Positions 48,201 through 50,716 of a stretch of 64,000 nucleotides of DNA are shown piece after piece (within the stretch, counting starts at the first letter, position 1; the number at the start of each line of letters is the position of its first letter). The position numbers and the translations under genes are program-made. This DNA is from Lama glama. Lineage: Eukaryota. The stretch is taken from NCBI GenBank assembly GCA_028534125.1, contig CM052826.1, positions 20,026,001 through 20,090,000 of the forward strand, given 5' to 3'. The notes below the pieces were generated by a model. The model saw only the letters and a program-made list of their open reading frames with translations. It had not been told where the DNA came from and made no database searches.

Positions 48201-50716
48201 GCCCGCTCCCCCTACCCTAGCCGCACCCTTGAGTTTTGACCTTCCACCCCTGGGAAGCCCCAGCTGCCCCAACCAGGTCAGAGAAGAGGAAGGATCTCTG
48301 CTTGGTGTGGAGGAGTGCTGTCTCCTGGGACCTGGTGTGGTCGTGGGAATCCCAGCAAGAAACCCCGCTTTGCTCCTCTTGGGGAGGGGGGGAGCCTGGA
48401 TCGGGCTCACTCGGACAGGTCACCTTCTGATTCCCACTCAGTCCTTGAGTTCCCCATCGCCAAGTCTGGCCCCGCGTCCCAGGGTCTGAGCCCGGCTCTG
48501 CCGGCTCTGTCACAGTGACCACATGACACCCAGCCAGGGCACCATCCCCCAAGTTTCCTTGAAGGGACCAGCGATGCTCTCCTTGTGTTTTAATGCTACC
48601 CCCCCCCCGGGGCCACACACTGGCTACTTTTTGACATATGAGATGTTTCTCAAACTGCTGCAGACCCCCGGCCCCTCAGAAAAATCCCCCCAAAGCCAAG
48701 GAGCCCTCCACCAACATCACTCGAAGCAAATCTACTTTAAGTCACGAGTGAGTCAACGCAGCCGCAGTGGGTTTGACCTCCCGATGGGGAGTGCTGGTGC
48801 TGGTGACAGGACCTGAGTTTCCTTGGGGAAGGGGTGAGGGGACAGAAAGACAAGGTGGCCCCTGATGGGGGCCGTTGGGGGTACCCAGCCCTCTAGTCTC
48901 CTCCCACCCCTGACCAACTAGAAGGAAGTCATTTCAGTTTCCCAGAAAGTGGTCAAGAGCGCTGCTTCTGGGGGCGCTGGCCACGATGGTGGAGGCCAGG
49001 GATATTACAGGAGGTGCTGGTGGGGACAGTCACGGGGGAGGTGGTGCTGGCTCTCTTGATGTCAGCACTGCTGTGGGCGCTGGTGACTAAGATGTGGCTG
49101 GCGTGGTTAAGGTGGAGTCGTGGTAGAGAGGTGTTGCTGGCCATCGTGGGGATCCGCAGGGATGCTACTGATCAAGGCGTTACTGACAGTGGTGGTTGGG
49201 GAGCTGCTGGCCGTGGAGCTGGTGGTGTGGTGACCGATGGTGCCTAAGGTGTTGCAGGCCACAAATGTATTTATGGTGATGGTGTTGTTGGTGGTCGAAG
49301 TGCTGCTGGCCAAGGGGTGTTTATGGTTGCGGTGCCTGACGTTCTGCTCACGATGTAGGCGGTTGAGGTGCTTCTGGGGTGGAGCTGGTCTTTCATGGTC
49401 AGCAGCAAATCTCCGGGGAAGACGGCAGCCTGGGGGACTCTCTGTCAGGCTCTGGGGTGGATCTGCTTTCAGCCCAGGCCCCCGGAGAGATGCTGCCACC
49501 CACCCTGCCCATGGTACCCATGCTGCCCACCACGGTGCCCGCCACGATGCCCACCACAGCCCCTGCCACGGTGCCCACCACAGTGCCGACCACAGCCCCC
49601 ACCACAGTGCCCGCCACGGCCCCTGCCACGGTGCCCACCACAGTGCCGACCACGGCCCCCACCACAGTGCCCGCCACGGCCCCTGCCACGGTGCCCACCA
49701 CAGTGCTGACCATGGCCCCCGCCACAGTGCCCACCATGGTACCCGCCACAGCGCCCACCACAGCCGCCCCCCTCAGCCTCTCCTCCACCCCAGGCTCCAC
49801 GTGCAACACGTGCCCTGAGAAGTGGGTCAGTTTCCAAAGGAAGTGTTACTACTTTGGCGAGGGCGCCAAGAAATGGATCCAGGCCCGCTTTGCCTGCAGC
49901 GACTTGCACGGACGGCTGGTCAGCATCCACAGCCAGGAGGAGCAGGTGGGCCTGGGTTCCGCTGAGGGCGCGCTGGTGGGAGATCTGCAGATCCCACCCC
50001 CACCTCCTGGATGATGCTCGTGGCAGTGGCGGTGGTGTTGGGGAGGGGGACGCAGGCACGTCTCCCCAGCCCTCCTGCCCTGTCCTGCTCCCCAGGACTT
50101 CCTGACCAAACACGCTAACAAGAGGGGCTCCTGGATTGGCCTCCGGGACCTGGACATTGAGGGGGAGTTCATCTGGATGGACAAGAAACCCCTGAACTAT
50201 AGGTGAGGAGGGGGGAGGGGGGCCTTTCTGGGATGAGAGGAGAGGGTATTTGGAGGGCATGTGCCCCAGGCCCATGGGGAGCTTCTGGACTGCAGCTGAG
50301 GTCGGGGAGTGGTGCAGAGGGGGCAGGGGCTGTCAGGGTCCACATCTCGGGGCACATCCCAGGAGACTCAGGGCCGAGGCAGATGGTCAGGGTTTGGAGG
50401 CAGGTCCAGACTAAGGGGAGAAGAAGGGGATGAGGGTGTCTCCAGGATGCAGGGAGTTGGAGTGGGAATCCAGGGATGGTGTGAGGAGGGCCCAGACTTG
50501 GAGGGATGGGTCGAGGGTGAAGGCAGTGGGAGCCCTCCCTCTCCCCCACCTTCCGACCCCGAATCCTTCTCTTTCAGCAACTGGCAGCCGGGGGAGCCCA
50601 ACGACGCGGGTCAGGGCGAGAACTGCGTGATGATGCAGGCCTCCGGGAAGTGGAACGATGCCTTCTGCAACAACCGGCTGGACGGCTGGGTGTGCGACCG
50701 GCTGGCCGCATGCTGA
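42292..50716 (+). CDS. FCER2: CD23, low-affinity IgE receptor (isoform a), 289 aa
   Basis: Exons 42292-42313, 43320-43436 (TM), 43756-43809, 46941-47003, 47190-47252, 47364-47426, 47553-47642, 49794-49945, 50096-50202, 50578-50716; total 870 nt. Protein MEESSFSD...RRRCC...[24 protein letters not shown]...[17 protein letters not shown]...[15 protein letters not shown]...WVCDRLAAC; three 63-nt stalk exons. Confidence 0.97.
42631..42688 (+). CDS. FCER2: putative CD23b alternative first coding exon (extended)
   Basis: ATG ACC CCT CAC GGC CAG (MTPHGQ, similar to human CD23b MNPPSQ) in intron 2; the phase-1 donor AAG|GTAGAG at 42688/42689 is in frame with exon 3. Confidence 0.5.
44186..46805 (-). 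mobile_element. Tigger1 (TcMar) DNA transposon remnant in FCER2 intron 4, interrupted by an L1 3' end (44831-~45229)
   Basis: TA|caggcagacctcggagatattgc terminus; transposase remnant [35 protein letters not shown] (ORF 45943-46203). Confidence 0.9.
49523..49762 (+). repeat. minisatellite: 20 x 12-bp units with a 60-bp higher-order period
   Basis: Blocks starting at 49561, 49621 and 49681 are near-identical 60-mers; translates as ([AVML]P[TA]T)n. Confidence 0.95.

Follow-up and report, generated by a model that had tools for sequence, protein, structure and literature searches.

Our study suggests that a 12-bp tandem repeat in intron 8 of FCER2, the gene encoding CD23, probably forms the core of an optional coding segment, by which the first lectin-domain exon is lengthened in an alternative form. 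The repeat lies in a 64,000-nucleotide stretch of the llama (Lama glama) genome (assembly GCA_028534125.1, contig CM052826.1, positions 20,026,001 to 20,090,000 of the forward strand; hereafter the window, in whose numbering all positions are given). We propose that the phase-1 donor of exon 8 (47642), which is normally paired with the strong acceptor at 49793/49794, can instead be paired with a weaker acceptor at 49472/49473, whereby 321 nt would become exon and 107 residues would be placed between the coiled-coil stalk and the lectin head; less often, the acceptor at 49448/49449 or in-frame CACAG sites of the array may serve. As read from public protein models, the long form arises from an old exon extension at an alternative 3' splice site and has already been annotated as isoform X1 or X2 in many species, and the term 'cryptic' that a first-pass annotation of the window had applied to the repeat was for this reason wrong.

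Results

Protein databases were searched with the contiguous genomic open reading frame and then with two public proteins limited to the surroundings of the insert. These searches returned 95 FCER2 proteins, a set in which clustering at 90% identity and length limits may hide some long forms, and our cross-species comparison of the segment is made on protein models exclusively. In 37 of the 95 proteins, from 29 species and six orders (Artiodactyla, with camelids, pig, goat and wapiti; Perissodactyla; Carnivora; Pholidota; Chiroptera; and the armadillo), a Pro/Thr-rich segment separates the end of exon 8 from the lectin exon, and NCBI as well as UniProt/Ensembl-type sources contribute long models. 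In 30 models the end of exon 8 is joined directly to the homologue of the acceptor 49472/49473, and the dromedary model P0048 (isoform X2) reaches the same 49473 acceptor via an extra exon. The insert of the pig UniProt model P0057 starts from the homologue of 49448/49449 and that of the Bactrian camel model P0054 (X5) from an internal CACAG acceptor, while four of the 37 (P0002, P0003, P0052 and P0053) are read-through or ab initio constructs. The use of the two upstream AGs, which the first-pass annotation had put forward, thus finds support at the level of gene models, where exon 8 is spliced to the homologues of both. The closest comparison is with isoform X1 of alpaca FCER2 (P0038): the contiguous reading of 49475-49912 is identical to it at 126 of 126 aligned residues, and the sole difference is a 20-residue gap in alpaca that corresponds to one 60-bp super-unit of the repeat. 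The same reading is 92% identical, without gaps, to a dromedary model. Two long models from pangolins (P0001 and P0029) have a C-terminus that is frameshifted after the first lectin exon, and other pangolin models are normal; either an error in the models or an additional FCER2-like copy in decay could be the cause.

All parts of the locus described here are on the plus strand. Exon 8, the last stalk exon (47553-47642, 90 nt), enters and leaves in phase 1 and ends at a G/GT donor at 47642/47643; its frame-1 translation shows one difference (T for M) from camelid FCER2 model peptides. According to the model junctions, intron 8 would span 47643-49472 in the long form, and the short-form intron extends to 49793 (2151 nt). 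Upstream acceptor A (AG at 49447-49448, exon start 49449) would add 345 nt (115 codons), and it is at the homologous residues that the pig insert begins. Upstream acceptor B (AG at 49471-49472, exon start 49473) would add 321 nt (107 codons); it is the acceptor of most public long models and the exact start of the insert in alpaca X1 and in the Camelus models. The optional segment that would follow acceptor B has three parts, namely a unique N-terminal part (49473-49523), which could be aligned across 18 long models from seven lineages, the tandem array (49524-49763), with its 12-bp unit, four 60-bp super-units and ten in-frame CACAG candidate acceptors, and a final part (49764-49793), which is also the pyrimidine tract and AG (49792-49793) of the canonical acceptor. 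The first 119 nt of the first lectin-domain exon from its canonical start (49794-49912) give the sequence match to CD23 in PDB. Between 49385 and 49777, 14 of 21 AGs are in frame, including all ten CACAG sites of the array; in-frame candidate acceptors are not limited to the two AGs named in the first-pass annotation.

Tandem Repeats Finder (TRF) reads the array with a 60-bp period (4.0 copies, 88% matches, score 347, 49524-49763) and with a 12-bp period (19.0 copies, 49549-49778), as well as with periods of 24 and 36 bp, and a separate repeat search found in it 19 registers at 12-nt spacing. No other tandem repeat with a TRF score of at least 150 was found within the 64-kb window. The array ends about 30 nt 5' of the acceptor of the first FCER2/CD23 lectin exon. 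Super-units 2 and 3 differ at one of 60 bases, indicating that the latest duplication is recent. Translation from 49451 is stop-free across the array and on into the lectin exon, in that exon's own frame, and the tetrapeptides encoded by the array have the form x-Pro-Thr/Ala-Thr, with Pro in nearly every four-residue unit. These results bear out what had been observed from the letters of the window: a 12-bp unit with a 60-bp super-period beside the acceptor of exon 9 (the first lectin exon), a reading without stops in the frame of that exon, a phase-1 donor at exon 8 and two AGs whose exon starts precede 49794 by 345 and 321 nt, each divisible by 3.

The insert varies widely in length, from 39 residues in its unexpanded form in armadillo to 55-115 in bats, 67-127 in carnivores and 124 in horse. 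Among camelids it has 87 residues in the alpaca model, 107 in the window, 91, 107 or 131 in dromedary models and 131 in Bactrian camel, differences that are all multiples of four residues, as a 12-bp unit would lead one to expect. These camelid differences fit a variable-number tandem repeat (VNTR), as far as the compared sequences go. Variation in length between alleles had been anticipated in the first-pass annotation, and the insert does differ between the window and alpaca and among the camel models; alleles, species differences and assembly collapse are inseparable in this comparison. The insert of the alpaca model, which equals the window at all aligned residues, is about 24% Pro, 31% Thr plus Ser and 28% Ala plus Val, and across 31 tabulated long models (two ruminant models left out) the fraction of Pro is 0.16-0.27 and that of Thr plus Ser 0.22-0.42. 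In ruminants, bats and cats the arrays have units of diverged sequence and are still open and rich in Pro, Thr, Ala and Ser. A Pfam search with the insert returned no family at E ≤1. The segment is a Pro/Thr/Ser-rich tandem-repeat domain without a known fold.

Conservation was measured on the 18 long models, in 126 inter-order pairs. Mean identity is 0.73 for exon 8, 0.63 for the unique first 24 residues of the insert (range 0.38-0.96, the value of 0.96 coming from one bat-cat pair), 0.84 for the last 12 residues of the insert and 0.79 for the first 38 residues of the lectin exon. The high value for the last 12 residues would be expected in any case, since the same nucleotides contribute to the canonical acceptor's pyrimidine tract. 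In the unique part gaps are of whole codons, which is forced by the use of protein models. Neutral simulation of 24 codons gave an expected identity of 0.62, 0.51 and 0.43 at neutral distances (d) of 0.25, 0.35 and 0.45, respectively, and identity at 23 of 24 residues was never reached at d of at least 0.25 (4000 runs each). Neutral distances between these orders are larger than 0.25. Compared with such distances, the mean of the N-terminal part would be only modestly above neutral, and the best pairs would be far above it.

Two other intron-derived pieces of Camelus models served as controls. Intron 7 (47427-47552, 126 nt) is read through in frame in the Bactrian camel model P0074 and in two seal models (P0015 and P0064); in this genome the same reading has a stop and, relative to the camel model, a mid-way frame shift. 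The extra cassette exon of the dromedary model P0048 has its homologue at about 47930-48078 in intron 8, followed by GCAAGT, a GC-type donor; here its frame shifts partway, after which the original frame is closed by a stop, and its coding is therefore not conserved within camelids. Unlike both of these broken pieces, the Pro/Thr segment is intact, with identical flanks. Because the flanks are identical, the within-camelid comparison was set aside as a test of constraint, being uninformative for substitutions and useful only through the two broken controls.

The gene is FCER2/CD23, with a CD23-type lectin exon, upstream stalk exons and a phase-1 junction. A PDB sequence search with the lectin exon gave 6pwr_A, 'Fc fragment of IgE receptor II', as the best match (E 4e-28), followed by human CD23 chains (E about 6e-25), and all named protein matches were FCER2. 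By tblastn, residues 7-159 of alpaca FCER2 map to 43316-47647, with the stalk exons on the same strand. Between these mapped stalk exons a run of N (45093-45229) lies inside FCER2 and may hide an exon. The last coding exon (50579-50716) stops directly after the lectin domain, and camelid CD23 would therefore be without the C-terminal tail of human CD23, which binds CD21 according to a passage of PMC6791321. Upstream of the array, from about 48780 to 49400, there are degenerate G/T-rich repeats (of the GGTG/GCTG type), whose composition is complementary to that of the array just downstream.

Discussion

We propose that the optional segment acts as a spacer between stalk and head. With Pro at every fourth residue the helix of the stalk could not continue, and the segment would most likely be a disordered tether, mucin-like and O-glycosylated, that makes the connection of stalk and head longer and looser, its O-glycosylation being what should be expected from composition only. 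Gain or loss of 12-bp units would change its length with the frame kept. The segment would also be old, to judge from an unexpanded 39-residue form in armadillo and expanded forms of 55-131 residues across Laurasiatheria. We infer that this animal makes the long mRNA; the segment may also affect reach, trimer geometry, IgE or glycan binding, or shedding. In PMC5374546, CD23 is described as binding IgE weakly per head, with trimer avidity needed; ADAM10 cleaves it in the stalk, and Der p 1 cleaves it beside the head, which releases single heads. A tether at the stalk-head junction could thus alter head spacing, avidity and the fragments that are shed.

A full-text literature search, with most subscription journals outside its reach, found no description of a Pro/Thr-rich long form of CD23. 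The passages of PMC6791321 and PMC5374546 consulted here make no mention of such a form, and the term 'mucin-like' is absent from the CD23 papers among the matches listed. As far as we have seen, the segment is present in public automatic annotation and has apparently been neither described nor studied at the bench.

Appreciable, but clearly lower, probability attaches to the explanation that the array is a neutral GC-rich intronic minisatellite accompanied by splicing noise, in which the AGs are used rarely, annotation picks them up and there is no selected protein function; the products of such noise would be in frame because the unit is 12 bp. A number of our observations weigh against an optional coding segment, and several of them are expected from noise. 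The stretch 49449-49793 is stop-free in two of the three plus-strand frames and in one of the three minus-strand frames (3/6 overall), and the target frame was also stop-free in 1338 of 5000 mononucleotide shuffles (27%), so that no selection is needed to keep it open, given the 12-bp unit and the C-rich composition. The open frame was consequently rejected as weak evidence for coding, as the first-pass annotation had rightly cautioned when it pointed out that other frames are open too. All ten AGs of the array are automatically in frame, and P0054 uses one such site. The upstream acceptors are weaker, with pyrimidines at 11 of 18 positions (-20 to -3) for acceptor A and 12 of 18 for acceptor B, compared with 17 of 18 for the canonical site, and it is because of these poorer tracts that the short form is expected to be the major product. 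The mean identity of 0.63 in the N-terminal part equals the neutral expectation at d = 0.25, and the signals of the canonical acceptor explain why the last 12 residues are conserved. Other in-frame intron pieces occur in the models, as in the retention of intron 7 in P0074, P0015 and P0064, and this read-through still aligns between camel and seal at 17 of 29 columns, which makes identity over short peptides a blunt tool. The external support consists throughout of automatic gene models, which can be built only across an open frame, so that 'always in frame' is partly a matter of ascertainment. Among the 95 proteins only short forms were found for five pinniped species, Bos, several bats, rabbit and rodents, and likewise for two primates, elephant, aardvark, sloth and tamandua. 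Assembly collapse could, moreover, account for part of the variation in repeat number between assemblies.

Splicing noise accounts less well for the recurrence of the same acceptor, together with a recognisable unique N-terminal part, from armadillo to camel, with pairs reaching 0.96 identity. It would also have to accommodate the breakage of two comparable intron-derived pieces between Camelus and this genome next to a Pro/Thr segment that has stayed intact, and the arrays of ruminants, bats and cats that are open and Pro/Thr/Ala/Ser-rich in spite of their divergence. If noise is nevertheless the explanation, the locus would be a clean example of how a 12-bp minisatellite by an acceptor gives rise to in-frame isoforms that annotation pipelines propagate.

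It is improbable that the long forms are annotation artefacts, that is, ab initio or homology-propagated read-throughs of an open intronic frame, with upstream acceptors that are never used in vivo. Some of the models do have this character, since 4 of the 37 are plainly read-through or ab initio and the two pangolin models P0001 and P0029 have frameshifted C-termini, but one homologous junction is shared by 30 models from two annotation sources, and long isoforms stand beside short ones in the same species. In the NCBI pipeline, alternative variants are derived from aligned transcripts or RNA-seq reads. Least probable of all, and rejected here, is a long RNA hairpin in which the upstream G/T-rich repeats pair with the C-rich array and hide or present the upstream acceptors, a role for which the array would have been retained: short inverted matches with the acceptors between their arms do exist (49061-49078 with 49693-49710, 89%; 49402-49418 with 49480-49496, 88%), but the fold of 48950-49800 (-394.8 kcal/mol) is no more stable than dinucleotide shuffles (mean -402.5 kcal/mol, z = +0.86), of which 18 of 20 fold at least as well.

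Beyond the optional coding segment itself, there is a broader proposal that we regard as doubtful, and advance only tentatively. It is that an ancestral placental optional linker between stalk and head was expanded in Laurasiatheria (camels, ruminants, pigs, horses, carnivores, pangolins and bats) into a polymorphic mucin-like VNTR, giving a regulated, functional long receptor with its heads on long glycosylated tethers, altered IgE or glycan avidity and altered shedding products. No long model was found for primates or rodents among the FCER2 proteins retrieved, which would fit a loss of the long form there. CD23 biology has been established on the human and mouse proteins, which are free of the segment in the models retrieved. 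Should dogs, horses, cats, pigs, ruminants and camelids make a form with a glycosylated tether of 40-130 residues exactly where stalk and head meet, the receptor geometry, soluble fragments and antibody reagents in these species would depart from the textbook. Repeat-length alleles might then influence the regulation of IgE or the parasite- and allergy-related phenotypes of livestock and pets, and a length-polymorphic coding repeat would be a candidate marker; veterinary allergy and parasite immunology are the fields that a real long form would affect.

Several known systems resemble the proposed segment in part. The macroglycopeptide of GPIb-alpha, the decamers of PSGL-1 and the repeats of MUC1 are Pro/Thr/Ser-rich, with units that are a multiple of 3 bp and vary in number between alleles, and they form stiff O-glycosylated stalks. 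These mucin-like VNTRs are constitutive, whereas the CD23 segment would be optional and its glycosylation is predicted. DC-SIGN and L-SIGN (CD209 and CLEC4M) are, like CD23, type II C-type lectin receptors encoded in the same gene neighbourhood, and the number of tandem repeats that separate their sugar-binding domain from the membrane is variable. Their neck is made of 23-residue helical units in a constitutive exon and drives oligomerisation; the CD23 segment, in contrast, would be optional and consists of four-residue units, each with a Pro that is incompatible with a helix. A heptad helical neck repeat of the DC-SIGN/L-SIGN type was accordingly rejected for CD23, given its four-residue units with Pro in nearly every one.

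The stalk of Dectin-1 (CLEC7A) is included or skipped by splicing. It is encoded by a cassette exon and has no variable-number repeat, whereas in CD23 an alternative acceptor would be combined with a tandem repeat. In PMC9788829, Dectin-1 is a C-type lectin receptor with an O-glycosylated stalk. A further comparison is with the known isoforms of CD23 itself, which come from the same gene and in which alternative splicing also changes the behaviour of the receptor. Passages of PMC6791321 describe the N-terminal a and b variants of CD23 and cite Montagnac 2005 on its extracellular exons, in which forms of mouse CD23 differ. In these known variants the cytoplasmic tail is changed or stalk exons are removed, whereas the long form proposed here would add a Pro/Thr-rich repeat through an alternative 3' splice site.

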